NCBI GenBank assembly: GCA_047495785.1 | Contig: JBLDXI010000003.1 | Coordinates: forward strand, 1,426,001-1,490,000 | Direction: 5' to 3' | From: Lepidodermella squamata | Lineage: Eukaryota > Animalia > Gastrotricha | Length of the DNA stretch: 64,000 nucleotides | Shown: positions 8,461 to 46,705 of the stretch, in pieces | Layout of the letters: the number at the start of each line of letters is the position of its first letter | How positions within the stretch are numbered: position 1 is the stretch's first letter | Notes under the pieces: model-generated | Told to the model about the DNA's origin: nothing | Database searches by the model: none | The model's input: only the letters and a program-made list of their open reading frames with translations | Translations under genes and position numbers: made by a program

Positions 8461-8496
8461 ATAGAAAATACTCATTCTTGACAATCTGTTCACTCA

Positions 8497-11400
8497 ATGT
8501 TTTTAAATATTACCTTTTTCGTGTCTGCTTATCTGGCCTTCTTAGCTCAGCAAATATCGATTGTGGCTGGTTGCAGTCCGAGTAATACAGGCAAAGATGC
8601 GGGGCCAGTTACGTATCCCATGGTAAGATTTCCAATTTGACACGAATGAGTTGAAGATTTATATTCTCTACGGCATTCTGATTTCTTCCTAGTACGTTCA
8701 ATGCTTCTCGAATGGAATCGGATCATGTAAAGCCGAATTATGTTCAATCGGAGAAACAGTTGTAAATATCTCTTGAATAATATTTTTACTGAATTTAGCC
8801 CGTAACCCTTGCTCTACATAGATATCTGAAAAATTCTCGGACTTAGCCGTCTGTCAGAAATCTGCGCAGGTTGGAAAGTTTTTCTCCTCTAAATCTGTTA
8901 TCGGCTATTTCTACCATCTAACATAATTTTCAAGCGATTTGTGATTTGTGGTTACGGTAATGACAGCGTCACCTGCACCCCTGCCGTTCCAGGGTGCTCA
9001 GGATCTCTGCGTTTGGTGAAACAAGTGAGGAATTATTAGGATTTAGGGTGAATTATATTTACAACATAATCCGCTGGCCACTCGTCCTCTTCTTAAAATT
9101 TGATGTGTTCTTCAACATGTCAAAAGGACTTACCTGGACCATTATATTGTGAGCAAAGGAATTCCACCAATGGCTCAAGCTGAAAAGATGAAAACTCCAC
9201 TAAATATATTTATACTTATCACAACTAGTTAGCGGCAAATATTTTCGATAATGTCGATCAATGCGCAGCCACAATGAGTGAATTGACATCCGTAAGCGCC
9301 TAATCTGCTGCAAAACCTCCCTCTTTAAGCTTGATGAAATTTTCGCTGCTCTTATTCCCAGAGATATGTCATCTGCGAGAACTCTAATTCAATTCTTGCT
9401 TGCGTATCATCTCAGCCAGGATGTACCAATAATTTGACAGTAAGCTCGAAGGTAAGTTTCACCATTGACAACATACGGCTGCATCGAATGCTTATTCATA
9501 CGCAATGCATCTCCCACATATCAGTACGGAAATCAGTTATTCCAATCTGCTGAACAATGCGCATCGATCGTATCTGCTGACGCAAAGGTATGCTCATGAG
9601 AAAGTCTGCTGAGCTGTTTGTGACCAGCATTTCCAGTCTGAACTAAAGTGGATCCGCTGCTCGAACGGTGTTGGAGGACCCGTCTGCAGATTCAAACAAT
9701 GCGAAGCAGGAGAAATGCGGGCAAGCCACCAATGCAACAAATTAATGTTGGGTTTCACTGTTCAACTAACAGCTCAACTTCACAGCAAACATCAACTTTG
9801 AATCAGAACTGTCCTGCAAAACCACATTATACGTGTGGCAACTCATGATATTTCTTCGAGTTCATAAAAAGTTTCTTCATCAATTAGGTCGCTGTCCCGT
9901 GCTATAATCCGTTAGCGAGCTCCTGGCCCAGCTTTCAGATCGTCCCCGGTTTCGATCACACTTTTCCCGCGGGCTGCAAGTCTCGGCAGGTGCAACTTTG
10001 GGTACGCCCACTTTAAAATCAATCAGAAATTATTTGACTCCACTTTTTTACAGATTGGCAGCAATAATTATTTGCGATCGAGTGGCCCCAACCTAGACGC
10101 TCAGTTGTCAGCATTCAACACGTTCAACATTCAGGTTCTCCAGTATACGGAAAACGTGAACAAAGTGAAAATTTGCTAATGAATAAGACATTTACTGATC
10201 CGAAACAATGTTTTCAGTTGACTTACACAAGGTGTACCCGTGACAATGGCCTGATCTGCAGACCCACTGAGGTTGGATGCTACAACATTGGCGAAGGCAG
10301 TCCTCAGGAGCTTCAGGTCTTTTTTAAATAATAATACGAGTGTATCTCATAGGTGGATATCAGGATGAAAATTGGCCCGAAGGAAGAATATCCACCGATA
10401 TCACTCGTATACGGCATTGTGTTTGAGCTAAATATTGGATCTTTCGGGCGCACGCTGATTGGTCAATCGATCATTACTATGACTCCCGGATGAAACTTGC
10501 AGTAGCGCTATCCATTGAATTTTTTGCTACAAGTATTTTGTTGTGCAGTGATTTGCCACGATTATTATGGATTATTATGGAGTTTACGCTCGTGGTCAAT
10601 GGAAACCGTGGCGGGGGTGTGGCAAGGTCATTTTTGCATAAATATAAAATAATTTATTAGTTGTTTCATCCCGGAGTCATAGCAACAGTAAATCGACCAA
10701 TCAGCGCGCGGGTCGAAGATTAACTTACAACTTGAAACACAATGGGGTTTTAGTGTACAAAACCGACGCAGTATCCGTTGTCATTTGGCAAGCTGATACT
10801 TAGTAACAGTCGGGACATTGTTAATTCAATAAACTACTACCACTAGTGCTGCTTGTAAAAGAAGTAGTGGCTTAAAATTGACAAAATTATCAAGCTCTTT
10901 ATATCAGTTAACAGCAGGAAGAACGTTCTCACTCAACGACTGTCAGTGCTGTCAACGACTCTACGACTGTCAGTGTCATTACGTAAGATAAAAACTGTTG
11001 ATCGGAAAAACTGTTATAACTTATATAACATGTTCATCTTCAATCAGGCCGAAATTCGAATGTGGTACTACTATCAACCTAGACAGCAAATTGGTACATT
11101 GGGCGGTCCTATCATGTGTCTTTCTGACGTCATAACTAAAGTTGACAGCAACAAAGTATGTGACTTTTCCGCGTAGAATCCGCTGACACAGGCATTTGTT
11201 ACCAGCTTTTACCGTCATTCGGGAATTTCTCCGATATTTCAACATGCATGTCAAGCGCCCTCACCGTAAGAGATTCGCCAAAAATTTTAAAAGTAAACGT
11301 AAATGTGTGCCGGTTTTTTTCAGGTGGTTTTCACTAAATACATTCGTTGTTTGACGCGCGGAGGTGGCTATAGCGATTGGGGTGTGGGGCTTACCGCAAT

Positions 11401-11972
11401 CGTTTGCCGACCCGTCGAGGTTGTGGGCAACAATTGTGTTGAATCTGATTACAGCAGATCACCAGTAAGTTGATTCTCATAAAAAAATTAAAACAAATCA
11501 CTAATTTTGCCTTGATACATCCGAAACCATTGTGAAATCTTTACTCAGTCTTGTGCGTTCGTTTAGCATTTAGTAGCTGAGTCGAAAATATTAAATTTGT
11601 CTATGATTGATTACAGGAAGGGGCAATCTATTCAACCGTCTACGATTGCCTAAGGGCCGACGTTGGCCACGGTCCGGTAAGATTTCGGCGGCTTCATTTC
11701 CCTAGAGACCATGAAAATTGTCATTCAGGCCAAATGCTGCTGCTTTGATGTGAATACCGGAATAAGCATATTGATCGGGAGTGTTGTTAACATCACATCA
11801 ACAAACCCCAACTTTTGTTCGTGTCCGATCGGCTACTATATTCCGGTATGTTGCTTATTCGAAGTTTATTGAAACACGCAGATCAGAGATTACTGCAATT
11901 TTCGTTCTCAAGGAACCCTACGCCTATTCAATCGAAATGTTCAGCGATCCGAGCAATTCAAGAAAATGTTAA
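8497..11972 (+). CDS. Cys-rich modular secreted protein A; 17 exons, about 490 aa, all introns phase 0
   Basis: Exons 8497-8622 (signal peptide MFLNITFFVSAYLAFLAQQISIVAGC), 8693-8761, 8822-8869, 8935-9024, 9525-9587, 9649-9720 (GC donor), 9773-9832, 9888-10001, 10054-10164, 10218-10316, 10908-10982, 11048-11155, 11206-11265, 11324-11464, 11617-11676, 11729-11845, 11913-11972. Each is a multiple of 3, stop-free, flanked by AG and GT(GC), and matched by paralogous exons in B, D and E. Confidence 0.85.
10402..10755. mobile_element. MITE-like element with imperfect long inverted repeats, in intron 10 of gene A
   Basis: cattgtgttt...gctgattggtc...tatgactcccggatgaaac versus gtttcatcccggagtcatag...gaccaatcagc...aaacacaatg. 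Confidence 0.6.
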
Positions 11973-15942: not shown

Positions 15943-15984
15943 AGAGTCTGATGATGGTACGAGCTAGTACCGAAACGTCACTTT
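15943..15984 (+). ncRNA. Minimal type I hammerhead ribozyme (pLTR copy 2)
   Basis: Same sequence as copy 1, 1933 bp downstream. Confidence 0.85.
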
Positions 15985-23825: not shown

Positions 23826-26800
23826 ATGTATTTGAAGGCGAACTGCTTTTCCTTTTCGCTGGGCTTCCTAGCTCAACTCATACCGATTGCAGTCTGCTGT
23901 AGCCCCAGTGGTCAGCCTGCCGCTAAAGATTCCGGTCAAGGTTCATTGCGTATGGTGATTTTATCTAATCTGCCAATTATACCCTGAATGCATCATGGCT
24001 TTTTCACTAGTATATTCAATGCTTCTCAAATGGAATTGGTTCTTGCAAACTCGATTCTTGCTCAAGCGGCGAAACAGCTGTAATTATATTGTTGTGAGGA
24101 TTTTTGATGCCGGGTATCAACCAAATCTTGGTGTTGTCGTTGAACATCGATCTATTTCGGGCCTTCATTCATCGAGACCAATCCACGATATACACCCGAA
24201 GAGTATATCCGGGATCAAAAATCCTTTTTAATGTTAATTATCTTCTCAGCGAATCATCTCTGCTCACTTTCACTCTAGATATCTGATAAATTCTCGGATT
24301 TAGCAGTCTGCAATAAATTTATTCAGGTTAAATTTCGGTATTTTCTAACTATGAAATAGTTGATCCCGACTCTGCTTTCTAGCGTTACGTGATATGCGGT
24401 CACGGAAATGACAGCATCACTTGCACACCTGCTGTTCCTGGGTGCTCAGGATCTTTGCGTCAGGTCAAGCTAGTGAGTTCCTTCACATCATGATATTATT
24501 AGCCTCTGATTATTAATTATCAAATCATATACTTGAAACTCACTCCTACATTGGAGGAACATATGTAGGAAAAATTCTAAGAAATGTCCTCGTATTTTAA
24601 GATGGAGGTACAGAACTGTATAATTAAACAGATGAACGGTATAAGATTGCCATAATTATCATGAGACGTACTAGGACGCCGGGGCTCGATTAAAACGACT
24701 GATTTTCGCGTTATTTTTTAATGAGGTCCGAATGTCACAACGGCAAAAAATCACCTCATTAGCAGCGATAAGCAAAAAGTCTCATTCACAAAAAGCACGC
24801 GTTTACGCAAAGATCAATTTTTTGCAGCGACCACAAGACCTCGATCTTCATCTCTAAACCTAAAAACGCCGGGTTTCGCGCGCCGTTTCTTGTAATTCAT
24901 TTTCACTTTAAAAAATATTAAATAACCAAAAATAATTAAAATGAATAATTTATAATTTGCCACTCAATTATTATGTTTAGTCCGCGGTCACGTGAATCAT
25001 TCTGCATTATTCCGGCACGTGACGCAGAGAATTTTGTATGGGGAGATAGGAGCCCCGGCGTCCTAGTACGTCTCATGATAATTATTCATGGTCCATGATA
25101 TTTACGTGATATTTACCGTATTTTTTGACCCAGTTTGCGAGTAATATTTTTTACTCTGTCGACCAGTGCGTGGCCACGATGGGTAAATCAACATCGGTAA
25201 AAGCATTATAGCTTCCCATTTGCACCTAAATCTTGAATGTTTTTGGACTTTGTCCCCAATTCAGCAATTCGTCATTTGCGAGAACGCCAACTCTATTCTG
25301 GCCTGCATAGCCTCCCAGCCCGGTTGCACCGGTAATTTGTCTGTCAGTTCCAAGGTGAGAGATAGATGTAGCAAAGGGTTGTATCATGGGCGATAGCAAT
25401 ATTAAATTCTTCAACACGTTAACTGCCAAAAATAGACTGTGAGATCGATATTTGGATCCAAATACTAAGCCTGTCAAAATTTCCTGCACCCAAATTTGGT
25501 GTCAAACTAACCGCTGGGCCATGGCCTACATTTTGCCCTGCGGCGCATCGTTGACCTGAAAAAGGACATTTCGACAGACCCGGGATTTGGATCCAAATAC
25601 CCATCTCACAGTCTATTTTTGGCAGTTAAAGTGTTGAAGAATTTAATATTGCTATCGCCCAAGATACAACCCTGTGCTACGCCTCTCTTTCTCACCTTCA
25701 ATTCTTCCGAAAAGTACGGAAATCAAATATTTCAATCAACTGAACAATGTGCAGTAGCCGTATCTGCCGATGAAAAGGTATGCTTGTGGTGAAAATCTGT
25801 TAGCCGTTAAAGCATTTCAAACTCAACAAGCCCAGGCAGAAATGGATCAGATGCTCGGACGGTATAACACCTGTCTGTCGACCGCAGCAATGCGGAGCAG
25901 GTGAACAAAGGGTGAGCTAATGATAGTTAGCTGTCGACGGGTTTAATTTTTGTTTCAATCGACAGCTCAACTTTACAGCAAATACTAACTTCGAATCTGA
26001 GCTGTCTTGCAAAGCTTCGTTATACGTGAGGATAACCTGATTAGAAGATACATGCATGAAATCCAAGAATCCAACGTTCATTGTTCCTCAGGTTGCTGTA
26101 CCCTGCTATAATCCGACAACTAAGCCTGAATATCACGCATTCGAAATCGTCCCGGGCTTTGATCATATCTTCCCCGCTGGCTGCAAATCTCGGCAAATGC
26201 AAATCGCGCTCTGGGTCTGCTTGATTTCCAAAGCCTAAATTTATAAGCATGATTTTCATACAGATAGGCGACGAATATTTGCGCTCAGACGTCCAAAACT
26301 TCGATGCTCAGTTGTCGAAATTTCCTGTCTGGGACGTTTTGCATTATTACGAGAACTTGAACAAGTTGCGTACGTTAAAATAATTCAGAAATGTTGATCG
26401 ATGCAGTGAGTTTTGAGTTTAGTTGACTTTCACAAGATGCTCCCGTGGCAACACCTTGATCTGCAGACCTATCGAGATCGGTTGCTACAATACCGACCAG
26501 GACAATCCAATGGAGTTACAAGTAATACATCTTGTTTTTCACCATTACTTGAAATATTTCTTTCAAATCTGAATCAAATCACATCTGAGTGTTGCAACCT
26601 TTCCAATTTTTGCTCCAGTTAACAGCTGGACTAACGATGAGATTTAACGAGTGCGAAGTCTATGTAAGTGACCCTGATGAAGATATTTTTGCTGATGTTA
26701 GGTATAAGATATCTATAACCAGTATGAAGAACGTATGTGGTACTATCTTTATTCCGGATTGCCAGTTGGTGCTACGTTCGACGAGCCGATTGCTTGCCAA

Positions 26801-27590
26801 CCTGATTACGTCACAAACCTTGCCGGTTTTCAGGTCTGTCCTTCAGTTAAACCGTATTCCCAGAAACGGACATAGGTATGTTCAACCAGCTTATGTCTTC
26901 ATTCGGAAACTTCGGTGACTACGGCTCCTGCAGATTCAGAGCTGTTACTGTTAGACATTATCTGCAAAGAGATATAAATATATTTTGATACTCTTATAAT
27001 ACTCCCAGCTGGTTTTCTCAAAACACATTCGCTGCTTGATAAAGAGCCCCGTTCGGTGGGACATTTGGGGCTCGGGACTTACTGCAATCGTTTGCCGGCC
27101 TGTTGACATTGTGGGCAACAACTGCCCCGCGTCAGATCTCAGCACTGCACCTGTGAGTCACTCAGATAATATTCTATATTGCTCAACACAGAACTCAGCG
27201 ACAATTTTCTAATTTTAATCTGATCTATTCAAATTCCTTGTTAACTATCATAACAATATAGGAAGGAGGACCATACTCATCTTACTCTGATTGCCTCACT
27301 GCTGAAGTTGGCCATGGCCCGGTATGGTTTTGCTTGGATTTGTTTATAGCGACCTGAAAAATTACCATTTAGGCGAAATGCTGCTGCGCGCAAAATATTT
27401 ATAATACGCAAGGAAGAAAATTGCTCGGAACTGTCGTTAAAAACTCCACTTCTTGTACCTGTCCAAGCGGCTACTATCCGGTATGCTGTGGGTTTAAAAA
27501 TGTTCATGCATAAAATGCACATTTCAATTTCTGTAGCACCCCTGGGCCGTCCAATTTTACAGCGACCCGAGCAATTCTACTGGATGCTAA
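23826..27590 (+). CDS. Cys-rich modular secreted protein B; 17 exons, phase 0; exon 9 donor non-canonical
   Basis: Exons 23826-23954, 24011-24079, 24279-24326, 24383-24472, 25715-25777, 25840-25911, 25966-26025, 26092-26214, 26264-26365, 26423-26521, 26619-26663, 26723-26833, 26890-26949, 27009-27152, 27262-27321, 27373-27480, 27537-27590. Exon-by-exon similarity to A. After exon 9 the sequence is AAG/ttgcgt rather than GT. Confidence 0.8.
24652..25085. mobile_element. MITE with perfect about 35-bp TIRs, in intron 4 of gene B
   Basis: ataattatcatgagacgtactaggacgccggggctc versus gagccccggcgtcctagtacgtctcatgataattat. Confidence 0.85.
25352..25698. mobile_element. Hairpin MITE with about 110-bp arms, in intron 4 of gene B
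   Basis: gggcgatagcaatattaaattcttcaacac...tgccaaaaatagactgtgagat and its reverse complement at about 25603-25680. Confidence 0.8.
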
Positions 27591-29689: not shown

Positions 29690-31126
29690 ATGTTGACCTA
29701 CTTAGCTTTTCTACTCATGCTAGCCAGTTTGATCACGGCAGGAAAAGACGACTGGGTAGCTACGGGAGGGGATTACGCCCGTTCAAGTTACAAGTCCACG
29801 GACTCTGCCGGCAATGCATTTGAAATAGCCTGGACTTACCAGGCCAGCTCAACGGAATCATCCAACCGCCAGCCTTTAGCTTACAAATCGCGCGTTTTAG
29901 TTCTAGCTGAAACGGACGGCCTCTTCATAGTTGACGCGAAGACTGGCGCATTTATAAACAACGTTAAGCTGAACAACAAAGCCAACTTCCAAGATCATAT
30001 TCTTGATCCAGACAACGATCTTTTCTTTGCCGCTGACGCAGATGGTATCATCTATGCAGTAGGGTTGACGAGCGGCTCTGAGAAATTACTCTGGACGAGA
30101 ACCACAAGTTCTACCCCACTAAGCCTCATGCCCAATCCTTCTTTGAAATTGCTATATGCATCGTTATTCCAATTCAAAGTTTATGAGACGTTGGCTCTCG
30201 ATTACTCCGGTGAAGTGATCGATGGTTACGGCTACTCTACATTAGATAATGCTTACATGCTGTCTCTGAGTAACAATCGATTGTTCGGGCTCACCGATTT
30301 AAACGAAAGCTCGATTGCAGAATTTAAAACACGTGAAAATGGAGACTTGATATGGAGTGAGAAATATGGAGGAGGGAGTACCCAGCTCTACGGACCAGTT
30401 TTGAGTGAAAATTTAGCTTTCGCAGCCTCGAATCAGGAAATATATGCAATTGATATTGATTCGAAGTCTGTTAAATGGACTTCAAAACTTGCTTCTCCGT
30501 ATTGCAACGTGTCTCTTCTTGGAACTAACGGGTATTACATTTATCGACTGTGCAAAGGGATCGTCAGTAGGTACCCTATTGATAGCCAAGGGGCGCCGTA
30601 TGAAGCTTTCAAACTTACTGACGACAGCTTGAACATGTTCATAATCCTTTCTTCTTCGGTAGTTGTGACAGTGGCAGATGGGGTTGATTTATACGATGCT
30701 GCGGTCGTTGGCGGGAAATTGGCTATGTATAGAAATAGCGAATTAGCACCTGCGACTGATGTGATATTTTACGATGGCATGTTTTACGGAATGACACGAG
30801 GCATGAATATCTTCGCGTTGAAGCTGGTGTTCAATGGAACTACAACCACGGCAGAACAAACGACTGCTGCTGCTGAAACTACCCCAGTTGTTACGACTAA
30901 CTCAGCTGTAACTTCGCAAGCTGCTACTACGGGGAGTCCAACAACGGAAATTCCTGCGACAACTCAATCTGCGGCTAGTTCGTCCCTTTCCACGACTCCA
31001 GATATTATCTCGACCACTGGGAAGAACGGAGCAAATATGCTTTATGATCGATATTCATTAATCATTGGTATTTTCTGCTTTACGGCTGTAAGATTGAGAT
31101 TCGATGAGAGTGAGATTCGAAGTTAG
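29690..31126 (+). CDS. Secreted or membrane-anchored PQQ-like beta-propeller protein with Thr-rich stalk; intronless
   Basis: Signal peptide; DWVATGGDYARSSY and repeated blade motifs (LFIVDAKTG, IYAVGLTSGSEKLLW, IYAIDIDSKSVKW); T/A/S-rich stalk; hydrophobic C-terminus after NGA (GPI or TM). Confidence 0.7.
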   Translation: MLTYLAFLLMLASLITAGKDDWVATGGDYARSSYKSTDSAGNAFEIAWTYQASSTESSNRQPLAYKSRVLVLAETDGLFIVDAKTGAFINNVKLNNKANFQDHILDPDNDLFFAADADGIIYAVGLTSGSEKLLWTRTTSSTPLSLMPNPSLKLLYASLFQFKVYETLALDYSGEVIDGYGYSTLDNAYMLSLSNNRLFGLTDLNESSIAEFKTRENGDLIWSEKYGGGSTQLYGPVLSENLAFAASNQEIYAIDIDSKSVKWTSKLASPYCNVSLLGTNGYYIYRLCKGIVSRYPIDSQGAPYEAFKLTDDSLNMFIILSSSVVVTVADGVDLYDAAVVGGKLAMYRNSELAPATDVIFYDGMFYGMTRGMNIFALKLVFNGTTTTAEQTTAAAETTPVVTTNSAVTSQAATTGSPTTEIPATTQSAASSSLSTTPDIISTTGKNGANMLYDRYSLIIGIFCFTAVRLRFDESEIRS

Positions 31127-31683
31127 AAGGGACATTGCGATCAATCTGTTACCGCCTTATAATCTATAAACCTGAGAAAAAAATGACCAGCGTAAACAAT
31201 TTAAGCTAAAATTTTGATATGCATTATTACATCGAGTGGTTCTCAAAACGGATATCCCCGTTGTTCACCAAATTCAGCATGCATATAGAACGCGAGCTGC
31301 TCTTTCACGTGGTATGAGATTTGATGTGGCTAATTGCTGCTCAGTCTTCATCTCATCAAAATAAATGAAATTTGGTTAGAGTGGCTAGGTTACTCGTTGC
31401 CTCTTTGTTCACCAGCCATTTTAAAACTTTAGTATGGAACGGCAATTTACGAGTCTATCGACATGTGCATTTCAACTGTCAACAAGTACACAGCGGTGAC
31501 TTGATAGTGCAGCCTTTCATTGCTTGGTATTATATCCTTTCTGTTTTCAGCGTTTTGTTGTGTGCATTACGGAGAACTCATTACCCACGTGTGCTCCTGC
31601 AATTCCCGGTTGCACTGGCGACTTGAAACCATCAAATCAAGTATGACGCTGATTCTTGAGACCCTTGATTGAATTAGGAATTA

Positions 31684-34600
31684 CCCAGTCGGAAATCAGT
31701 AGACCGAGAAATAGCGGAATGATCGAATTAGGATCGAATAAAGACCCATCAACTATGATCGTGGAAATTAGGTCACAGCTAGACCGAGGCGACCATTCAA
31801 ACAGCCCGAATCGTGTAAATTGCGTCTATACCCATAGATCGAGGCTCCTCGATCGCCAATAGGTCAGATTTTTTCAGATTCGGACAAGCCATCGCCATTA
31901 TTCAGCACATGTAATAATTACACGCAGGCCTAGCCACTTGGAGCAGGCCAGGGTCGTTTTAACAGGATCTAACCAGATCGATCTAGCCAGGGTCGACCCA
32001 CAAGCAGCGATGCTCTGATTTGACCAATAACTGAGCCACGTTCTAGCTCATCAATTTCACACACATGGATCTAAGGCGATAGATCTAGAGATGACCTACG
32101 GCAATATTCAGGTCATAAATTGTCTTGCTCGATTCAAAATTGGTTTGAGTCCAGCACGTGTCGTTATGACGCACCATTGTTACAGCATCGGATTTCTGAA
32201 CTACTTTGAGAATGAAATAAATCTCTCATTTCGCAATTCTTCAACCTAATTCGAACTTGTTATTTTTCATTATAATTTTGGTTTGATTTTGTTGAGGCTG
32301 ACTTGCTTTTTTCACTGCTATGCTAAGGGCTAAGGCTATGCTGCTACCTCATTACTCTTAGTTGATAGTATTAGTAAACTTATTATGAAACCACATAACC
32401 GCTAAACCACATGTAGTTTCTAGTTTTCGAACCCCAATTTAACCGACTGGGCTAAATAAACTTCAGTCACACATTTCATATTTTTAGAATGTTATCAATT
32501 TCTATGCCGATGTCACGGGCGAGATATGGAGAATCGCAATTGATAGCCTTAGTAAATTTATTAAGATTTTTAAGATCAGAGAAATTCTGAAAGCCTGTTT
32601 ATTCACCCACTAAATCTTACCTCTAAAATACATGTAGATTCGAACCCCATTTCAACTAAATAAAGTTTTCGACATTTTTAGAATTTTATAAATCTCCATC
32701 CCGATGTCAGCCGTCGGCCGTAGTACAGGCTTGAAATGTCCGTCTTTTTTTTCCTGAATTTGTTGATATTTCTACTTTGGATCTTCAAACTCACGTCAAC
32801 CATTCTCGCCCGTCAACTAAATTTTTTGCGAAATTGCTTCATGTTCAACTTCGCGTACCAAGGCAGTTCCAAATCGTGATCTACTTGGTTTGTTATTTGT
32901 TTCGAAAATTCCACCTTAATTAATGAAGCTACCTCATATAGTTTCCTGTCGATCCCTTTTCAACAGGCTGACTGATCAACACCGGAAGATATCGTCGCGG
33001 TCCTAATTAGCAAATCTTAGTCTTTTATCCTATGCCGAGTCACAACAAAACAACCACCACTGCGGTAAGAAATTTTCCAGCCTCTGCTAAAATTCAAGCT
33101 AAATTAAAAAAATAGAGTAAAAATAAAATCGTAAAAATCTGAATTCCAATATCCAAATTTGTTAGATTGAACAGAAAGATTGCCTCAAAATTATTAGCAA
33201 CTTGAACTAATTTGGCGAGTTGACTATTAAAAATCACTTTGGCATTTCAGCCTAAAATTGTGCTAATAATTCAGCTAAATTACAAATTTTCCGAACAAAA
33301 ATCGAATTTTGAATTTTGGATTTGTTTAGATGCTATGATTATGATGAAGACCAATTTTCGGACTAAAGAAAAAGATGGAACGATTATGGTTGAAAACTGC
33401 GACAGGCAGCTGGTGAGTGAATAAATTTTTTTCATGTTCCCATTATGTCTAAAAATAATTCCCTCAATTTATGGATCGCCTAAAGCATCGTCAACTCTGC
33501 CCAAAATTTCGAATTGTTTTTCGAATTTAACCGTCGTCAAATTATGTGAGTAACAATATATTTTTTTATTATTGCAAAGACTAGGAAAAAAAATTTCAAA
33601 ATTTTCAAAAAATCATTACTTTGTTTTGAATTTTCCAGAAACAAAAGTCGATTCAAAATTTTGGCACGAGGAGGAAGTACGGCCGAATTTCAACGCGGGA
33701 AGTCAATTTTCACCTATTGTTCTGTATTTCTGAGACGATTGTTCAGGTTCAGGTTTGAAAACCGTGCCAAGGTAACGTGTGCAATCACCCTTTCGCCGCG
33801 TCAAGTCGGGTTCCAAGTTCCAACGGAGGTGAGGGTTTCAATACCCCGCTAAAATTTTCCTGAAACAAATTATTTTGAAAGTAGATGAAAGCTGGAGGGC
33901 AGAAAGCCGAAATAACTCGAGGCAGCAACGGCTGAGTTGCAGGAAAATGGTATCGAAATTGTAAGCAGAGAGACATTTTTTAAATATTTATGTGATTTTT
34001 GATCAATATTTTCTGAAATTCTCATGTAATTATTTCATGTTATTCTTTCGCCTGAATCTTCAGCAATTTTCGCCAAATACTAATCGTTTGTCGAATTCAA
34101 CCACCGTGAAATCTTGTTGGTAAGAAAAACGCATTTTTACAATATTTTGTTTTATGGTATCAGCAATAATAAAAAATTGAAGTTATTGAATTTTGTTTCT
34201 AGATGCAAACGATGGTTCAAAACTTCGGGCGAATTTCAACGCGAATCTCGATCGAAGTGAAAATGGCAAGTCAATTTTGCAGCTATTTTTTATTTATTTT
34301 TTGAGAAAAATGTTTAGGTTCACCGTGCCAAGATAACGTGCTCAATTTCCTTGTCGCCGAGTCAATTCGAGCTCCCATTTCAGGTAAGACCCAGTGATTA
34401 ATTATTGCGAAAAATGTGATTCTCATCTTAAATTTATTTTCGCAGAGATAAAAGTTCGCATATTTTCGCTGGACTGAAGTAGCGAGTGACGAGTGACGAC
34501 GAGAAGGTGAACTCGAGGCGGCTACGACTTCATTTCTGGAAAATTGAATTGACATTTCAATCAGAGGGACATTTATTTATATTTATGTGATTTGTGACCT

Positions 34601-34956
34601 ATTGCTTCATCGTGCTAGTACGAGGAATAGAATATTGCGAAACTTATTTTTAAATAAATAAATGGAAAACATTGGAATAATTCCTTTTAATGAGAGTAAA
34701 TGAACCAAGTAGAGGAACAGCTGGGGCCGTGATTCATGCGGGCAGTTCAAGCCGGTGTTATGAACTGGATCTACGCACGATCTAATCGCGAAAATTTAGA
34801 CCTACCGCCGGTCTATCCATCAGGATCTATCCGCCGTCTAGGTAGTCGCTAGCTAGATCTACCCCAGTGTCATTTTTCGCATCCCACACGATCTATCCAG
34901 ATAGACCCAATAATAGCGGTTAGGGTCTAGCTAGGATCTATTTTTTTACGACTGGG
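31684..34956. mobile_element. Non-autonomous DNA transposon with CCCAGTCG termini and TA duplication (EnSpm/CMC-like), in an intron of copy C
   Basis: TA-cccagtcg...cgactggg-TA; clusters of GATCTA/TAGACC subterminal motifs at both ends. Confidence 0.6.
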
Positions 34957-35293
34957 TAACGGAGAAAATGTGTAGTTCGGCTCTCAAAGCTACGATTCTG
35001 CAATGCTTTGCCGATCATCTATTTCAAAGAATCTTACTGTAACTTTAAGACAGGAGTATCAATCGTTTGATGTGTGGAGATGTGTGAAAGGCGAGAATCC
35101 ATTGCCATTTCTACTTTCAAGGTTCTTCTTTTTGTGCAAACATTAGCAAATACAAATACCTTATTTCCCATCAGCGATATACAGTTTGTGATTCCGCAAG
35201 CTCACAATCCGTATGGGTAGCTGCTATTCCTGGATGTACGGGAAATCTCCGTGTGTCAAATCAGGTATTGAACTTCTGGTTCAATACCTGATA

Positions 35294-37037
35294 CAGTGCT
35301 CCCTCGTTAGTGGCACCCTCCTTAAAAGAACTCCCTCGTTTGTAGACCGTAATTTTGGACCCTGCTAAATAAATTAGTTGTAAATTTTTAATGAAAGAAA
35401 AAATAATTATTTGATAGATTTAAATAATTAAGCGTGAACATATAAAATAATAAAGCGTTCCTAGAAACCTAGCGGCGCGTTGTCGTGGTTTTGAGAGATC
35501 CAGTTATTTCAAGTTTAGTTCAAACGAGTTGAAAGATCAACAGTCCATTAAGCTGTTCTTGTGGCTTTGAAATGGCTTTGATTATGCAACAGAGTGTGTG
35601 GATTAGCTGCCACTCAAGTCGTCTTGTTTTTTTGTTAAACTTTTCCATCAGAAATTACGCCAGTTTATCAGACAAAATCAGCAATTCATTTCACTAACTT
35701 CTATAAAAATGCCCGTCAATCTTCTATCTCCTCGATTTGCAGGTTTTTCCTCACGTCAATTGTTGATCAACTAAAAGACTCATGTGAATTGCCCTGATTT
35801 TTCATTTTTTAGCTTTTTCCCGGCCAGAAAATCTCTTGAAATTTACCAGCATTATTAGCATGATCAAATTGGGATAGGAATCGTGTTTTTAAGGAAACTG
35901 AAACATCCTAATTTTGTTCCCAGCTGTGTTGCGTAATCATGAAGAATCATGTCCTTATTGTTTTAAGATTTATTTTAATTTCGATACATGGATTCATTCT
36001 CATAAAATTAGACCGATTTCATTCGTTCCAGTTGTCCTGAGTTATTGGAATTATTAGCCGATTTTCGATAGTCGATAGGCCTGATCTAACATGAAAATGG
36101 CTGCCACTACTCTACGATTTCATTGCTCAACGCCTTGGCAATTTTACGACAATTTTTTCACAACTTTTAATCATTCAATTTTGACTTTGAAAATCGCAAC
36201 ATCCCGAGGAGGGGCGGCGGGAGCTTCTGCCCGAGTTTTGTACCTTGCTCTGATCTTAATAGGCCAGTCGAATGAAAACGAGATCACGCCTGAGAAGATA
36301 CACATTTATTCTATTCAATCTAAACATCCTCTTGTTCCCTCTTCCCTCTTGACGGAACCACATGTCTTATGGCTTGAAATCGGTCCGTGTTTGCTCAATG
36401 CCATTAATTCGATGAATTTAAAACAGAAAAAGTCAGGTTAACCGCGAAAAAATTGTCGAAAATACATTATTCATCCTAATTGTTTCATATTATTTTTTAT
36501 ATAATTATACGAATATTAGGCGAAACATGAGTTCTGGATTGAACACTTGAGAATGTTTGGCTGAATATGTTGGTGATTTATTCAGAAGTATTCTGGTCAA
36601 TCTTGACCAAGGTGATTGATTTTTTAAGCTGCTATTTCAAATGAAATTTGTTTGCGAAATCGGACGAGCTGGGCATTTTTGAAGTAAATTGAAATAATGA
36701 GATTCCAGGTTTTTTTATTCTGAGTTCGTTAACCCCAGGCAGGACTTGAAATCAGAGTAAAAAAACAAGGCCAACCAGCCCTGGCTAATAAGAATACAAA
36801 CTGGGCGACGAACTTACAATTCATAGTGTTACTGTTTCACAGCCTTCAGCGAGCGAAATTTGTAATGACACGTAATCCGTGTCCGTCTCTTTCTGCGCGT
36901 TGGCATGCCAACTGTCTTAAGACGTAGAAACGGTCTATTTTTAGCTTCTGCATTCAATTACAGCCCTCGTTATAGCTTTCCCTTGTTTAAAGACCGGGTC
37001 TGGCTCCCGACCCAGTGCTTTTATCGAGGGAGCACTG
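35294..37037. mobile_element. Tc1/mariner-pogo-like element, CAGTGCTCCCTCG TIRs, TA duplication; related ends at 12682, 52513 and about 58157
   Basis: TA-cagtgctccctcg...cgagggagcactg-TA; no intact ORF inside. Confidence 0.8.
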
Positions 37038-37243
37038 TATCACTCCTACGTGGTAACGCACTCCCATTTTCTTAGTACGCTGCGAGATATTTCGACTCAG
37101 CTGATGAGTGTGCCACGCTGATCACAAAAAATCAACCGATACCACGATATCGATGGTTTTACGCTATAACAGACCGATCGCATACACGCTCAAAAAACTC
37201 TGCAGCATACATAAAGGTATGCAGGGCTACTAGCGCGTATTCG

Positions 37244-40195
37244 GAGTACTGCGCACTATAAAAAGTACTACGCGCGCATAATATTATAATATATACTTAT
37301 AGCCCGCATTCTGTGTGAAAAATAATGAATGCACTGGACAATTGACCAACAAATATACTGAGCTTTTTGTGGATGTTTCCATGAAATTTTCGGATTACCT
37401 GGTGGAGAACAGTCGAACGTATCCAGAAATTGATAAAAATGCATGTGTAACCGTGGGTTTTCTGCCGTTAGGCGACCTGATAGCGACCTGAAAGTGCAAA
37501 AACCTTGAAAAAATGCACCCACTGGCGCTTTTGGCGGCACTTCTTCAAGAAGCAGAATAGGTTCAACCACAGGTTTGTCACATTCCCTAGTAGAGCACAT
37601 AAAAGGCTTTGTGGGGAACTAAGAAATAGCTAGTTAATATGGTGGTTATCCACGGCTTTTCAGTCGTTTCCCTCCCGGCTTGCAAATCATAGAGAAAGTG
37701 AAAATTTGGTGTTTTCAGTCGCTCTTATCTCGAAAAAACCCATGGTTGCACCATAGCTTTTTGTTGTCAAATTGGAGCCGGCGCTGGGAGGAAGGTTTTG
37801 ACAGGAAAAGCAGCAAGGATCCCCACAGCTTATCCACGACTTTTTCGTCGTGATTAGCACTCACTTCGTCCGACCCAACACCTCGAAAATGCATGACCTT
37901 GCGTCTTTTGGAGCACTGCTGCAAGAAACGGTATGGGTTCAACCACAGTTTTGTCGAATTCCCTAGTAGAACACAACAAGATCTAACTTGGGAAGATAAA
38001 TTTAGTAAATTTAGTGTTTATCCACTGCTTTTCAGTCTTTTCCCTCCACTTCCGAATCAAGTCCGAATCGAAGGAAAAGTGAGCATTTTTCATCCTTCAT
38101 GGCACTCATTTCGAAAAAAACCATGGCAGCACCGTAATTTTTCGTAGTCAAATGGGGGAGGCAATTGAGAAGAAGGTTTTAAAAGGGAAAAAAGCAAAAA
38201 CCACCACAACTTATCCACGACTTTTTCGTATGCTTAGCAATGACATTTCAAGCACAAAATCGAGATTCGGAGCCGTTCTATTCTGAAACCGCACAACGCG
38301 GAGACTTTATTCCAAGTCTCACAAGTTGATAAGAGTGCCTTCATCTATAAGGATACCATAAGGATAACTAATATGATGAATTGGGGTATCCCGTACCAAC
38401 AATTTTCAGTATTCCGTAAGAAATATGTTACTGAGCACTTTTCATTGTTCAGTGCGTGAAATCACAATGAAAAGTGCTCATTAGCATAATATTTCATCCT
38501 GCGTAATACTGAAAATTGTTGATACGGGTATGCATTCCGCCCTGAACCGTTGCCCTTACCGCGGCAACAAGACGCTCGAGATGCGGACCCATACCATTTA
38601 AATCCCTGGTATCTGTGGACTGACGTAGTACAGATTACAGATAGGTTTCCGATTATCCTTCTTGCCTCTCATGCTCGCTTGCATCAACTTAAAGAAAATA
38701 CGGTGGTAAAACCAGTAGATTTTGCTAATTACTCCTGCGGAATGCTCTTTGTGAGATGTAAGTAAGTTGGTTTCCCTTTGATTTAGTAGGAGTGGTAAAG
38801 GTACCATTTTGACACTTTGTATCAAGAACGCGGGCGAGATATTTTAAAATGCCCACAATGGCAGGTTGATTCATTGTTGCTAGTTAGCTAACGCGTGGAG
38901 GCTTTCCTAGACGATCGTTTTACACTCGCCGAGAGTCCACTTTCAACGACAGCAGGGCGTACGCGACCCGACCCAACATTTGCCGTGAATTACGTTGCCC
39001 GCTACCGCCACGGGGAGACTGCCGTTGTCGCTTGAACAGTAGTAAGGTCTACCATCAAAAGACTCATTTGGGTAATTTAGTTCAGGTGGATGGAAGGTTT
39101 TAGAGAACTAAATCGTTCAGCCAAACCATGGCTGCAACTCGAAAGCGAGAAAAGTTGCCAGTGGTTATTAGTACGGCCGTGCATGCCGCTGCAGGATCCA
39201 GCCCAAGGGCCAACCGAGGCCGCTACAATGGATCAGAGGGCCATTGTAGGCCACTACAGTGATACTTTTCCGGCTAATGGTTTTACCACCAAAATGTCTT
39301 GGATACGATGCAAGTTAAAACGGGTGTGGATAACTATGATGGGGAACGCATCTTTACTAAGCAGCTAAACGGAAACGAGCAACTGAAATCGGACTAAAAT
39401 CGGATGACTTTGGATAAAAACCGCATTTACTGACAATTTCTTACTTCCTTAGTAAGATCTTGTTGTGCTCTACTAGAGAACGCGAAATAACTGTGGTTAA
39501 AACCAATCTGTTTCTTGCAGCAATGCCCCAAAAGACGCCATGTCACGCAGTTTCGAGGTGTTGGGTCTGACGTAGTGAGTGCTAATCGGGACAAAAAAGT
39601 CGTGGATAAGTTGGGGTGGTTCTTGCTGCTTTCCCCGTCAAAACCTTCCTCCCAGTGCCTTCTTCTATTTGACTACAAAAAGCTACGGTGCAACCATGGG
39701 TTTTTTCGAGATAAGACAGGCTAAAAACACACCATTTTCACTTTTTCCTCGTTTTGCAAGCCGGGAAGGAAAAGACTTCAAAGCCGAGGATGACAACCAT
39801 ATTAACTGGCTATTTCTTACTTCACTAATAGGCTCTCCATGTGCTTTGCTAGGGAATGTGACAAACCTGTGGTTGAACCCATTCTGCTTCTTGAAGAAGT
39901 GCCGCCAAAAGCGCCAGTGGGTGCATTTTTTCAAGGTTTTTGCACTTTCAGGTCGCTATCAGGTCGCCTAACGGCAGAAAACCCACGGTTACACATGCAT
40001 TTTTATCAATTTCTGGATACGTTCGACTGTTCTCCACCAGGTAATCCGAAAATTTAATGGAAACATCCACAAAAAGCTCAGTATATTTGTTGGTCAATTG
40101 TCCAGTGCATTCATTATTTTTCACACAGAATGCGGGCTATAAGTATATATTATAATATTATGCGCGCGTAGTACTGTTTATAGTGCGCAGTACTC
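37244..40195. mobile_element. Foldback-like element with about 700-bp inverted arms
   Basis: 37244-37595 is nearly identical to the reverse complement of about 39845-40195. Similarity decays inward. The left arm contains a tandem subrepeat of about 377 bp. Confidence 0.85.
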
Positions 40196-42289
40196 TCTAT
40201 AGAGGTTTTTATCACTGGTCGCCTTTAGCGCAAAATCATCGATATGTGGTGTGCAACAACGCTGACGTTTTGCTGGTCTGTGTTCCAGAGCAACCAGGGT
40301 GCACAGGTGGTCTGTCGCAAGCCAGTCAGGTTCGGATTATTCAAAAATAATTGCACGTATTATCTTTCGTTGCTATTCTTCTAGTATATTTCTCAATCAT
40401 TTACTTCGTTTAGCCAATGCCTCAACGACACAGTAACACTCTCAGCGGTACGTTCCAATCGTCTGAAGAAAGATAGGAATCTCTGTATGACACCAACTCC
40501 AGAAATACCGAATTTGTGACTCTGGATCTGGATTACCAGTCTGCGTCACTGCAGCATTTGGGTGCACGGGTACTTTCAAGCCATCCAGCCAGGTTAATGC
40601 TCAAAACATTCACTGTGTTTCCTGATTAAAATGGTCTCATTATCCTACATAGTTCGGAACACTTACCTACGATACGCCAATTCAGTGCTACGCAGAAGTA
40701 TCCCGCATATCCGAGGTATGACGATTTGCTGTGATTTTACAGTTACTTGAATGGCAGACCGCCATAGCAGCTAATTCTCGAAACAGCGAACGCGACAAAA
40801 CAACGACCGCACAGTATTACACAGTACAGGGAGAATTTTCGCTGTTTTTTCGGTTTCGTTGTTCTGCGCATTCGCTGTTTTGACGTCTACCAGTTTACCG
40901 CCCTGTACAGTGGCAAAACAATTTGATAAACAATTATGCGCTTCTATTAATTATTAATTAATTCAAAATTATTAAGCGTTTTGTCCTCTGTCAATCGAAC
41001 GACGCAATGGTATTATGCATAACTGCGGCACCTGGTTGCACTGGAAACTTGCGTCGCATTGACGAGGTACATAAGTGGCTTTATTTCATTTCTCATGATA
41101 TGGGCAGTATAGAGAACGTTCGATTCGGTGGATCAATGCAACTCGGTTTTGACTGGCTACTATCAGGTGATTTTAGACCCCCTTCTCTCAACAAATGTAA
41201 CACATGAGAATAGCCAACGACAAGATGGATTCGATGCTTAAATGGCTCCCAACCATTCTGTCGCACTAATCAGTGTGGCGCCGGTGAATTTCGGGCGAGT
41301 CTCACTTTGGCTAAAGGTTACAACGCCAAAATTTTAACAGAAAACTTGACCTTGAGTCCTGATCCCCCTAATTTCGCGTAGAGGCTTTCACACGGAAGAC
41401 CTATTTTACTATCTGATAGGGAGCTGAAACTTATGCTGCCATAAAAACCAGCATTTTGACAAAAAAACCACTTGCAAGTTCACGCCTAACCCATATGATT
41501 GTGAGGCTGCACTATGTTGTTTTGGTTTCAGAGCTGAACTCCGTCAGCAAGGTAATCAACAATTTCTAAAGATATTTGTTTTGAAACAGCTCAAATTTAC
41601 GTCAGCGATCACTTTCGAATCCGAGCGCGCATGTCTCTCAACATTATATGCATGTTTTCACATGAAATTTGCTTTAAAAACAACATCATGTTTTCCATTA
41701 GGTGGCGTTACCTTGTTATCAACCAATAGCAGATAGGCCTTACTTCAACGTCGCTCCTGGTTATGATCACGTAGCTCCTCCCGGCTGCAAAGATGGGCAA
41801 GTTATTATACATTTAATTCTAAAGATGCCTACCCCTTATTTGCAATCTGAAAGTGCTGCCTTCACTTCCTTGTTGTCCATCAACTTCTTGTGGGAGCTGT
41901 TATCAAACGCAGAAAATTTGAAATCGGCAAGTTACAAGAAATATCAACGCCAATATCCAACTTCAGCTTGAACTTCAACGAAACAGATGAAATACAAAAG
42001 GACTCGAGGCTGGCTCGCTTTCGCGAGCCGGACGCCTCTCGGCCAATATCGGAGTACTATAACTCGTTATGTTCGACGCGAATCCACTATGTATGTTATC
42101 GTTCGGTGGGACAAAACGAGCCGGACCGGGTAGGATAGCTAGACAGCAAGGGTGAATTTCTAAAATTAAAAAATCCATCCTAATATTTTCACTAACGTTT
42201 TGCAAAAATCATTGCTATTTATTCATTTTTCGATACCGCGATTTATTTCACGCATCATTTTTGCGGTTGCTTTCACGGAAAATTGCTTA

Positions 42290-42650
42290 TATGGGACGCC
42301 CCGCCTTATTGGAACCCTTGGCTTCGAAGCTGAAGAAGAAGATGAAGAAGCGGACCAAGAGCGTACGCTGTTCCAGGCAGTCGATTGTGTCTTGCTGCTG
42401 GACTACAACGCTGTCCGCGCCTAACAATCGGTTTTTTTGGAAGAAGTTCAATTCCGAACTGCGAATAGGATCAAAAGAGCGCTCTACAAGAGGCTGAAGT
42501 TGGGCGAGCATTCCATCGACGCTTTGGTGAAGAACGCAGTGTCGAAAGCCGGGATTAAGAAAATTCTCTCCGGCCACTGCGTGCGGAAATGTACCTGGTG
42601 GACTAGTTGATGCCCAATGAAGTAATACCAGAAAGGGCGATGCGTAAATG
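42290..42650 (+). mobile_element. Degenerate Crypton-like tyrosine recombinase fragment
   Basis: One frame reads ALYKRLKLGEHSIDALVKNAVSKAGIKKILSGHCVRKCT (HxxR box), preceded by a frameshifted ...YNAVR-PNNRFFWK segment. Confidence 0.55.
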
Positions 42651-43410
42651 AATGCTCTTTTCAATTACCGAATCTTGAAGCTGGAGGAGCAGCCTCGCCC
42701 ATGCTCTCTTATAGTTCGGAGATGGAGCAGCCTTTGGATGATCCCAACGCGAGCAATCAACAATACAAGCTAGTAGCTGACTCGAACGGAAATAGGGACG
42801 ACTTCATCACCCTCTTTCAGTTCCGCCCTCCTACGGACCTTTGCCACGATGCCATACGTTTTGAAAATTTTGAAAATGTCAATAAAGTAATGATACCGCA
42901 ATAATGATTTGCATCTCTTAGAGCAAAAATGTCGGGCTTTTCCTTATTTATTAAAACAAAACTAGTTAAGAAATAAGAAAAATGCGTGTTCTTTTGGCTA
43001 GTACAGTCAGGGGCGAGTGGTCGAGTTAGGCAATTTGACAAATAAAATTAAGAAAATCCCCCTTAAACGTCTGTTATTTGTATTTTGGCCAGTATCGATA
43101 ATTTTTGTACCACCGGACGATAACGATATGGCTCATGAAAACATTTCCACATAGAATGCCTCCGATCAAAAGTCATAATAAATTCTGAGGCATCCTTTGA
43201 TGCCAAGCAAAACCGATATTATATCGGCTTTTAACTACAAGAAGCTTGCCCAGACCAGCGGAAATTTCTGACGGCGCGCGTGTGATAGCGGCGGTTTTGA
43301 AGTGCCTCGAATCCATTTTGAGAGGAAGTCGAGCAGCCGCATGACTTCGTTTCATTGATTAAGCGAAATTGTCATCTACACAGCCAGACATTTTCAACAC
43401 TAGACTGAAG

Positions 43411-46400
43411 ATGATCAACTTTTTTAAGGTCACAATTCTCGCCTCCACTTTGATCAACTCATTAGCGCAAGAAGGTCAATATTCAAATAAATCTGTGGAA
43501 AAGGGTAAGCGATATCGGTTACACGTCCTTGGCTTTGCGGTTCTTTCAGGGTATCCGGCGCTTGACGGGAAGACCTGCGTACCTTCCATGCAAATTGCAG
43601 TAGATGCAGCTAACAATCGGTCTGATTTTCTGGCAGATTACCACATAGAACTACGCGTGGCAAATGAAGGCGCCTCGGGTACAGAGGTCATGAAAGGCGT
43701 CATGCAATTCGACCAATACTTCCAGCAAAACAAGAAAATCGAAGAAATTCAGTCACCGATCATAGCTGGTCCATTCTTCACACCAGGGTGTCTACCAGCA
43801 GCGGCATCAATTCACTACTGGAACACGGTAATGATTTGCAACGGGTGTGCATCTCCAGGAGCTACATCCAACCGGAGACTTTACAAAAACTGGTATCTAA
43901 GCCGCATGCCACCAGAAATGATGGCATTTGCCAGGGTCAAATTCGTTAAGGAAGTCGGGAGATGGTCGAGGGTAGCTCTACTGAGTAATGCCCTAAATGA
44001 ATATGACTATTCCCTTGCTCGTTTCACGTTCAATACAATGACTCGAGCAGGCGTTAACGTTATATGGTACGACACCTACATAACTACGCCGTCTCAAGAA
44101 ACGGTCAAATCACTGCTCGGAGTTCACGCCAGGGTTATCATCACGGAGGGCAATGGTCCAGGCTTTCTAACTCTGCTTTGTCTTGCGTATCTGCTAGGAA
44201 TGACTGGGCTGAAATACGTTTTTGTCGCTTCGCCCTTGTTATTCACCGATCCCAAGGCTTACCCTGATCCTTTCATGCCGGGATGTTCCCGCGCTGCGCT
44301 GACAAGCCAGGTACGTTGAAACATATTTTTTTTAAGTCATCATAGTGTTGATGGACTGTTAATGCACAGCGATCGAATATCCTTACTTCTTTTTCTCACC
44401 AATTTCCCCGGAATTCAAGTGTGAAGATTGAAAAACCGCACGTTGGATTTCGTTAAAATGTTGTGTCTAGGCGATTGACGCTTCTCTCCGTCAAAAGTAA
44501 AAACGGACAAAATTGATGTTCGCACGCTCTAAAAATAGCTCGGATGTGAGTAGAATAATTGAAGAGATCGAATATATCGCGACAGAACGACTCGACTAAA
44601 ATATAAACAAATGGCGTATTGCTTTTAATTCGCAGGCACACAACTGACTTGGCGAAGATACAACAAGTTTTACGCCCATCTGTTTATGATCGTGGCTCTA
44701 GGCGAGTCGTTCTGTCGCTCAGTGCGATGTGTCATGGCACACTTTTTCAGCCTTTATCAGGATGCGATCTTCGATCCCGGAGCTGCCGGGGATGGAAAAA
44801 TGTTTTTTGCTGTATTTGCCAAAATGACTAGTCATTTCGGTGAATAACCGAGTGAAGCGAGAAAATTTTGAAGATTTTCTACTAAAACAAGCTCCACAAC
44901 CTCTCAAAATTAACGAAACAGTGGGATAAATTCTCATTTTGCTGTCCAGCCCGGCCGAGCTGGGGGGGGATGATCCCCCCCATCCCCCCCCCTGAAAGTC
45001 GCACACTGGCCTTTATATTTAACTTCGTACACCATCCCAAAGCCTGAGCCCACCTTTAACCTCAGCTGACCTTTTACCCTGAATAATCATGAACTTGAAA
45101 CCATGAATTAAATTTGAAAACCCCAGGTAAAAAGTGCATTCTACGTTGGAACTGTGACTGCAGCGACTGAAAATCACGGTCCGACAACACTCGGTTATGA
45201 TTTGTCGGAATTCGAGGCGAGATTCGACGCAGCGACAAACAGCCGTAGATCTGTCGAATACATACTACGTCACCAATGCCACGACACCATTCTCACAGTC
45301 CTGGTCGCTTTGAATGAGACTGAGAGGCTGCTAAAGACAAGGTATAATCTAACGTTGCGAGCAATAAAGACCCATCCCGAATTAGTCATGCTGACAGCGA
45401 ATGAAAGCATCAAATACATCGAACTGCACGGGCTTACCACAGGCTTCAAAAGGTACTCAGCCCGTCTTCACATGGATGAGGAGCCGCAAATGATAGCTCA
45501 GTGGTACCCGGAGAGAGGGCTCCAGCCAGTTTACAAAATACTTCATGAATATGGCAAAGACGTTTTGAATGATACGACTTATTACTCGGTAAAGGTCGGG
45601 GATGTAGTGTGGCAAACTTTGGACGGAAAACCGCCGAACGATGGGCCTTTGTCTCAAGTGATAACAGACAATATTCCGATTTCAGCCTCGGCAGCTTTAA
45701 TATCGATTTCCGTGGCTCTCTCTAGTTTCCAAGGATATTTGATCATAAGAGACAGGATGAACCATCAACGGAATCCTTCTGTTGATTCGGGTGTGTTTCT
45801 CCACGTGAAAGTACCGGTTTCAATAGCTACAATTATCTGTAGTATGTCGGCTATATTGTTCGCTTTACCGCTTCATCTCATCGGCGAAGATTGGGTTTGC
45901 TATTGCCAACTCTTCTTTTCTGTACTTGGAATTACCTTACTGAATGGGTCCCTTGTTGCTCGGCATTTTGTGTACTTCTCCACGTTTCAAAACTATCAAA
46001 ACGTGATAATGGTCAAGCCTAGTAAATCTCTCACTCCTCTAGGGAAACTGAGTGTTAGATCGAGCAGAGTCAGTATGGCGAATAGCAGGACCAGCTTTTC
46101 TCAAATGACATCCGCCACAGCCATAAATCCTAATTCGTACTCGATTCCCTCAGAAAATGCTGCTCCGAATCTTCGCACCTTCGGACTTTGCATCGTGACC
46201 TTTGCAATCGTCAACATCTCGGTATTAACAGTTTGGTTCGTCATAGGTGGTTTTGAGTTACGGAAGACTGACGAAAGCGAGAAGGCTTATGATGAAACGA
46301 GTGACACTTACTGGGCAAGAAATAGTCACTACTGCCATTCTGAGTACCAATTCGCCTGGCTTTTGGCTCTTTTCGCTATTCATGCTATTTGTCTCTTCAC

Positions 46401-46705
46401 TGGGCTTGCAACCTGTTATACAATACAGTGTTGGAAAATGAAGCTGTCCAATGGCGAGGTTGTATTAGTTCGTATTGCTCTCATCAATGCTGCTACTCTT
46501 TTTCTCACAACAATGCTAATTTTCTCGCAAAATAAGTCGCGCAAACGGTAATCACCCTTCAGCGCTAATTGTTCTCCTGTCGGCCTCGGTTACCAATCAG
46601 TACATTGTCGTTTCAACCGCATTACTCATTCTATCGTTGCTGACAACAATGGCGATTTTCTGGGAAACTTACTTTCGCAAAATTCGCTCAGCTTTGCGGC
46701 TTTAA
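43411..46705 (+). pseudogene. Second GABA-B-like class C GPCR paralog (exons 43411-44310, 45127-46705) with a frameshifting 49-bp insertion in TM6
   Basis: Strong similarity to the first GPCR and the same intron position. The ORF stops at 46551, while the end of TM6 and TM7 (LIVLLSASVTNQYIVVSTALL...ALRL*) continue in another frame from 46565. GCTAATT is duplicated at 46515 and 46564. Confidence 0.8.

Follow-up and report, generated by a model that had tools for sequence, protein, structure and literature searches.

How does one exon module come to be present once, twice or five times among the members of a single gene family, and is the member with five copies still a gene? The question is raised by a 64,000-nt stretch of the gastrotrich Lepidodermella squamata (GCA_047495785.1, contig JBLDXI010000003.1, positions 1,426,001 to 1,490,000, or C3:1426001-1490000 in the contig numbering used here; hereafter the window), a transposon-rich region of short introns in which six related multi-exon genes lie in tandem, all on the + strand. 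Their labels, A to F, are taken over from an earlier note on this DNA, which had described an accordion-like variation in the number of one module, the RFVxC..PGCxG exon with its short partner. Here I report that the number of modules does vary at a single position, that this variation is old, and that paralog C, which carries five of them, is probably the recently dead relic of a five-unit paralog.

The order of genes and exons was established by a translated self-comparison of the window and by profile hidden Markov models (HMMs) of each exon type built from the window sequence. Paralogs A, B, D and E share the order x0, x1, x2, M, p, M, p, x6, x7, x8, x9, x12, x13, x14, in which x0 is the first exon and encodes a methionine followed by a hydrophobic leader, M is the module exon and p its partner. 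Exons with three cysteines (x1, M, x6, x9, x12 and so forth) alternate with exons having one (x2, p, x7, x13 and so forth), the basic unit being a module exon of 30 codons and three cysteines and, always following it, a partner exon of about 21 codons and one cysteine. The exon boundaries checked in the family follow the pattern AG, exon, GT in phase 0-0, the partner exons included; the lesions of C are considered separately below. With a leader preceding cysteine-rich repeats, the proteins are predicted to be secreted. Comparison of the profiles of the exon types with one another gave weak links only (x1-x6 90%, x9-x12 93%, M-x6 26%), and a descent of all exon types from one ancestral unit of two exons and four cysteines is plausible.

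By the HMM of the module exon the window contains exactly 13 copies, every one of them on the + strand, with E values from 6e-12 to 4e-19, the next best match in the window having an E value of 0.23. Twelve of the 13 are 90 nt long; the second module of E (E2) is 81 nt long, owing to a deletion of three codons. All 13 consist of whole codons and are directly followed by GT, and 12 are preceded by AG, the exception being the third module of C (C3), where AT is found. The counts of five in C and of two each in D and E given by the earlier note stand, with their coordinates exact, whereas A and B, to which it had assigned one module each, have two, the copies at 9362 and 25265 having been missed. 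Its further statement that all copies differ is borne out by pairwise identities of 26-83% at the amino acid (aa) level, and so is the single-copy state of the other modules, since x1, x2 and x6-x14 occur once per gene in the exon-type map.

Searched with the same profile, the whole genome (121 Mb in 151 contigs) holds 29 module copies, and a profile of x8 retrieves only ten strong genes of this type. Four full genes have a single module, three of them at C3:1.81-1.83 Mb and one on contig C9; in these four, partner exon and x6 lie too close together to leave room for another unit. Several short units lie 33-60 kb upstream of the window, with one or two modules each. The module numbers found in the genome thus form the series 1, 2, 5, and more than two modules are found only at C. 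The slot between the partner exon of the first module and x6 is empty in the four genes elsewhere, holds one unit in A, B, D and E, and five in C. Number varies nowhere else in the gene, as the earlier note had proposed in confining the expansion to one position.

In C the exons follow one another as p1, C1, p2, C2, p, C3, p3, C4, p4, C5, p5, x6, x7, x8 and a stub of x9, with a strict alternation of modules and partners throughout (Table 1). With its 67% identity to the partner after the first module of D, p1 belongs to a first module that has been lost upstream; the five modules fill the variable slot. Four of the five keep all their cysteines. A relaxed search for further, decayed modules in the introns of C returned only short matches at chance level, followed by stops.

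Three large gaps interrupt this array, and they are young transposon insertions. The third is a foldback element, for which inverted arms of 784 nt with 89% complementarity came out of a repeat scan (37212-37995 and 39444-40227); as some 34 nt at the outer edge of each arm for the most part fail to pair, the ends of the element are placed at 37246 and 40193. At least 20 paired copies of it, up to 96% identical, exist in the genome, all starting at the position corresponding to 37246. Subtraction of the three transposons brings the array from p1 to p5 down from 9,734 to 1,757 nt, and its introns, then 46-261 nt long, resemble those of the intact paralogs. Such compactness, together with the strict alternation, argues that C is one gene and not a set of collapsed fragments.

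The ends of this gene are missing. No x0 or signal-peptide exon, x1, x2 or first module exon is found in 31100-31440, even at E values up to 50. Next to the 5' breakpoint lies one arm of a miniature inverted-repeat transposable element (MITE), the relatives of which number more than 40 in the genome at 85-90% identity, most with a second, inverted arm about 45 nt away; a single arm, where two are nearly universal elsewhere, points to a deletion breakpoint on the 5' side of C. At the other end x9 breaks off after six codons at a multi-copy transposon (42000-43128), and neither the rest of x9 nor x12-x14 is found between that transposon and the start of the next gene at 43369. Start and terminal exons have thus been lost, as is typical of unprocessed pseudogenes. 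To these losses are added lesions within what is left: the C3 acceptor is gone, one cysteine of C2 is replaced by tryptophan, the partner exon of C2 is over-long, x7 ends in a GC donor, and x8 is without the donor of the family. Stops and frameshifts, the other mark of a pseudogene, are absent from the 377 codons of the retained exons. Since the lesions include neither, the inactivation of C, if real, would be recent; the step from lesions to loss of function is itself inferred, not proven.

Several observations weigh against a dead C. Its exons have remained without stop or frameshift; a GC donor is tolerated in the family, the intact A using one at x6; C may have a divergent start exon that went unrecognised; and D and E, which appear to be intact, have transposons in their introns as well. 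In D, a C-terminal fragment of a reverse transcriptase, an open reading frame (ORF) of 267 aa, lies at 48489-49292 on the - strand, in the intron after the second module, so that intact paralogs, too, tolerate intronic transposons. The module tree, finally, has 30 columns and is poorly resolved, leaving the order of gains and losses uncertain.

Alternatively, C might be a working gene in which, in line with the earlier note, the extra modules lengthen a variable binding or spacer region, with its start in an unrecognised exon or supplied by a neighbouring transcription unit. All 14 exons being open, 12 of them having a canonical AG and 11 a GT, the low ratio of nonsynonymous to synonymous divergence from D (see below) and the confinement of the expansion to one slot would be in keeping with a functional product. 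Such a gene would, however, have to begin without a recognisable signal-peptide exon, x1, x2 or first module, some 300 nt downstream of two intronless genes on the same strand; it would have to end without the C-terminal exons, a transposon having truncated x9; and no canonical AG allows in-frame splicing of C3, since the part of the preceding intron that is not transposon contains no AG in frame. A working C is therefore rather unlikely. The idea that its five units are alternative cassettes, used in a mutually exclusive or combinatorial manner as in Dscam to diversify one secreted protein, fares worse: the five module exons are all 90 nt long and in phase 0-0, and C3 to C5 lie close together, but module exons are never adjacent, and the alternation with partners is that of the constitutive parts of the intact paralogs. 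Moreover, the copies have diverged as much as different module types, one is without a cysteine and one without an acceptor, and the gene has neither end, so that this reading is very improbable. Hardly more credit can be given to the notion that the array is a live device for diversity, its five divergent cassettes of module plus partner either entering, by combinatorial or exclusive splicing, transcripts begun elsewhere in the cluster, or serving as donors of gene conversion to the neighbouring intact paralogs; were it true, an orphan secreted family would possess a Dscam-like or pseudogene-donor-like way to vary one surface.

An artefact of assembly, in which fragments of several genes had been collapsed or misjoined at repeats, was the case that the earlier note itself had set against its proposal, and both ends of C do coincide with repeated elements. 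Collapsed fragments are contradicted by the 1.76-kb alternating run of C, in which no x0-x2 or x6-x14 exon is interspersed. The window contains no N; the copies are too divergent for a collapse of near-identical repeats; alternation and phase continue across each of the three transposons, on whose removal 56-75 nt of normal intron remain; and a misjoin within a MITE would be expected to leave a whole element rather than half of one. An artefact is accordingly the least probable of the explanations considered, and a paralog that died recently remains the one best fitted to the locus.

The history of the units can be followed further. Among themselves the C modules share 33-50% aa and 46-54% nt identity, a divergence equal to that between the module types found at the first and at the second position in other genes, and such values imply that the duplications are ancient. 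For an accordion in the sense of ongoing, rapid change, one reading of the earlier note's term, the locus gives no support, near-identical units being absent from C. The phylogeny of individual modules that the same note had proposed, built from all 29 genome copies and weakly resolved with its 30 columns, places the modules found at the first position, whatever the gene, in a single group (support 92/90), which has no member from C. In the remainder, where resolution is poor, C1, C2, C4 and C5 group with the second modules of D and E, and C3 with those of A and B.

Losses may have accompanied the gains. The partner that E has behind its first module corresponds, at 52-57% identity, to the one that D and C have behind the second, and in the second module of E, at 56170, the deletion of three codons removes the PG of PGC. 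This suggests that E lost one partner-plus-module pair that D kept and retained a different second unit (55905-56384). The slot has seen both gains and losses, all of them old.

C also bears the marks of long constraint. The 294 codons of its 11 array exons are all open, for which the chance probability is about 2e-8; over the exons shared with D the ratio of nonsynonymous to synonymous divergence (dN/dS) is 0.20 at a synonymous divergence (dS) of 1.3; and the cysteines and the PGCTG motif have been retained despite divergence. Taken together, these features show that purifying selection acted on the five-unit gene over most of its history.

The following course of events would account for these observations. 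As the exon pairs are symmetrical and in phase 0, tandem duplication or deletion of a unit would keep the reading frame, and such events would have altered the number of units at one slot, after the first module, possibly through unequal crossing-over or replication slippage, whether the exon pairs involved were neighbours or belonged to different paralogs of the tandem. The five units of C would stem from ancient duplications that purifying selection long preserved. At breakpoints associated with transposons, C has since lost its 5' part (promoter, signal peptide, x1, x2 and first module) and, on the 3' side, most of x9 and the exons after it; it has further taken in the three young intronic transposons and acquired its splice-site and cysteine lesions.

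Relatives of the family were sought exon by exon and with natural read-through stretches. Ten single exons had no match in Pfam at E values up to 10; of three natural read-through stretches spanning whole units, two had no match and the third reached DUF5765 below threshold only (E value 0.034, 14.8 bits against a curated cutoff of 25 bits). When 1.84 billion representative proteins were searched exhaustively with the HMM profile of x8, the best-conserved exon, two of them matched, both unrelated repeat proteins. A structure model was made of one unit, from a natural in-frame read-through (L035:4497-4700) that includes 17 intron-coded residues. In it the module exon supplies three strands and the partner exon a helix, at a predicted local distance difference test (pLDDT) score of 75; against the PDB the model found no fold match (Foldseek E value above 1, VIA-align Z score at most 4.1), and given the 17 intron-coded residues no claim about the fold is drawn from it. 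By these searches the family would be a lineage-restricted orphan, without relatives outside this genome.

Table 1. Members of the gene family, module and partner exons of paralog C, and repeated elements in and around it (window coordinates)
Feature	Position	Strand	Description
Paralog A	8497..11863	+	complete: signal-peptide exon, x1, x2, two modules (8935, 9362), x6-x14
Paralog B	23826..27498	+	complete; two modules (24383, 25265)
Paralog C	31433 to about 42001	+	five modules; both ends cut off
Paralog D	about 47380-53501	+	complete; two modules (47779, 48104); reverse-transcriptase fragment in one intron
Paralog E	about 55480-60179	+	complete; two modules (55905; 56170)
Paralog F	from 63095 (x8)	+	cut by window end
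Module exon starts	A 8935, 9362; B 24383, 25265; C 31551, 35175, 40240, 40503, 40977; D 47779, 48104; E 55905, 56170	+	
MITE arm	31174..31370		one arm of multi-copy foldback MITE, at the 5' breakpoint of C; second arm absent
Partner p1	31433..31495	+	21 codons, 1 Cys; 67% identical to partner after first module of D
Module C1	31551..31640	+	30 codons, 3 Cys, AG/GT; closest relative is second module of D (63% aa)
Transposon insertion(s)	31680..34958		fills intron from C1 to p2; multi-copy, up to 98% identical to other copies; 56 nt of intron left
Partner p2	34976..35038	+	21 codons; 57% identical to partner after second module of D, 52% to partner after first module of E
Module C2	35175..35264	+	middle Cys replaced by Trp, 2 Cys remain
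Transposon insertion	35291..37040		fills intron after C2; more than 40 copies, nearest 95% identical; 61 nt of intron left
Partner exon of C2	37076..37216	+	over-long, 47 codons to first in-frame GT; no donor at usual 21-codon position
Foldback transposon	37246..40193		inserted 46 nt upstream of C3; 75 nt of intron left
Module C3	40240..40329	+	3 Cys; conserved acceptor AG reads AT
Partner p3	40385..40432	+	16 codons, 1 Cys
Module C4	40503..40592	+	3 Cys; PGC reads FGC (Pro to Phe)
Partner p4	40653..40715	+	21 codons, 1 Cys
Module C5	40977..41066	+	3 Cys, AG/GT splice sites
Partner p5	41113..41166	+	18 codons, 1 Cys
x6 of C	41214-41294	+	single-copy; GC donor
x7 of C	41590-41649	+	single-copy; donor GCATGT, GT in paralogs A, B, D
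x8 of C	41702 to about 41806	+	single-copy; no family-type donor
x9 remnant of C	41984..42001	+	3' end of intron and first 6 codons align with D, E, F; then cut
Multi-copy transposon	42000..43128		truncates x9; up to 95% identical to other copies

The cluster has company of several kinds. Between B and C lie the two intronless genes mentioned above (28158-29342 and 29690-31126, +). The product of one combines a signal peptide and two fungal-type CBM1 cellulose-binding domains (Pfam E value 1e-19) with a linker rich in Thr and a C-terminal domain; that of the other has a PQQ-like beta-propeller (Pfam E value 4e-10), a stalk rich in Thr and Ser, and a hydrophobic tail. The genome contains no close DNA paralog of either, and both may be horizontal acquisitions. 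Immediately before A, and likewise before D, stands a gene resembling class C G protein-coupled receptors (GPCRs); the two are paralogs (4563-7158 and 43369-46702, +), each with an ANF_receptor domain and a weak 7tm_3 match and 56-72% identical in aa; the presence of such a gene before both A and D makes it seem that the ancestral duplication unit was a GPCR gene plus a Cys-rich gene. Between the first of them and A there is a degenerate partial copy of the 5' region of A (7292-7511), comprising a promoter-like block (7292-7410, 75% identical to 8351-8471) and half an x1 (7467-7511, 87% identical to 8722-8766); an intact leader exon was not seen in it.

Mobile elements are found outside C as well. 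A retroelement at 13633-16070, Penelope-like by eye, has an ORF of 619 aa with a GIY-YIG-like C-terminus and direct repeats at 13633-14015 and 15605-15948 that are 100% identical, which marks it as very young. Two related ORFs for transposases of the Mutator-like element (MULE)/FAR1 kind (34-2274 and 61682-62772, +; 31-40% aa identity) lie towards the ends of the window; the second is split and sits where the 5' exons of F would be expected, and no family exons of F are found within the window upstream of its x8 at 63095. Outside the window, at C3:1371000-1393200 on the - strand (loci L030-L032), there are five or six tandem units made up of a leader exon, x1, x2 and one or, in some cases, two modules, without x6-x14.

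As to what the locus means, it is a clean and small example of how symmetrical exon pairs let a putatively secreted repeat protein gain and lose units at one position. This is ordinary exon-duplication biology in an orphan family, and a known kind of repeat gain. C would represent a whole paralog caught shortly after its death, with both ends gone, four transposons in and its frames open; its five-unit array would be of interest only if RNA showed that C is used. In annotation, C is best labelled a pseudogene or fragment, and the gene models of A and B need two modules each.

Among known systems, tandem exon duplication varies the number of domain repeats in extracellular proteins such as DMBT1, with its SRCR repeats (PMC9038570), and repeat expansions are known in fertilization proteins (PMC8830517). 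The present family resembles them in that a Cys-rich, probably extracellular module is encoded by frame-neutral exons and differs in number between gene copies within one region of the protein. Module and exon boundaries coincide in one phase, the copies are homologous, and the number of units varies while the flanking exons are single, as expansion by symmetrical exons implies; the near-identical units that would betray a recent change are not found. It differs from those proteins in that the unit is a pair of exons and is in phase 0-0, unlike the classical metazoan modules with their phase 1-1, in that the copies are ancient and the variation is between paralogs, and in that the longest array stands in a truncated gene. 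Closer to hand, the upstream units at C3:1371-1393 kb share with the family the signal-peptide, x1, x2 and module exons and phase 0, but stop after one or two modules and are without x6-x14.

Arrays of the Dscam type consist of tandem, mutually exclusive exons, the variants being directly adjacent, with no constitutive exon between them. C is like them in having tandem exon variants of equal length and the same phase in a gene for a putatively secreted or surface protein, and unlike them in that a partner exon follows every module exon, so that the pairs run in series as in the intact paralogs, and in that the host gene is truncated. It is with unprocessed pseudogenes that C has most in common: introns kept, promoter and first and last exons lost, splice sites damaged and transposons accumulated, the difference being that no stop or frameshift has yet appeared in the exons it retains.

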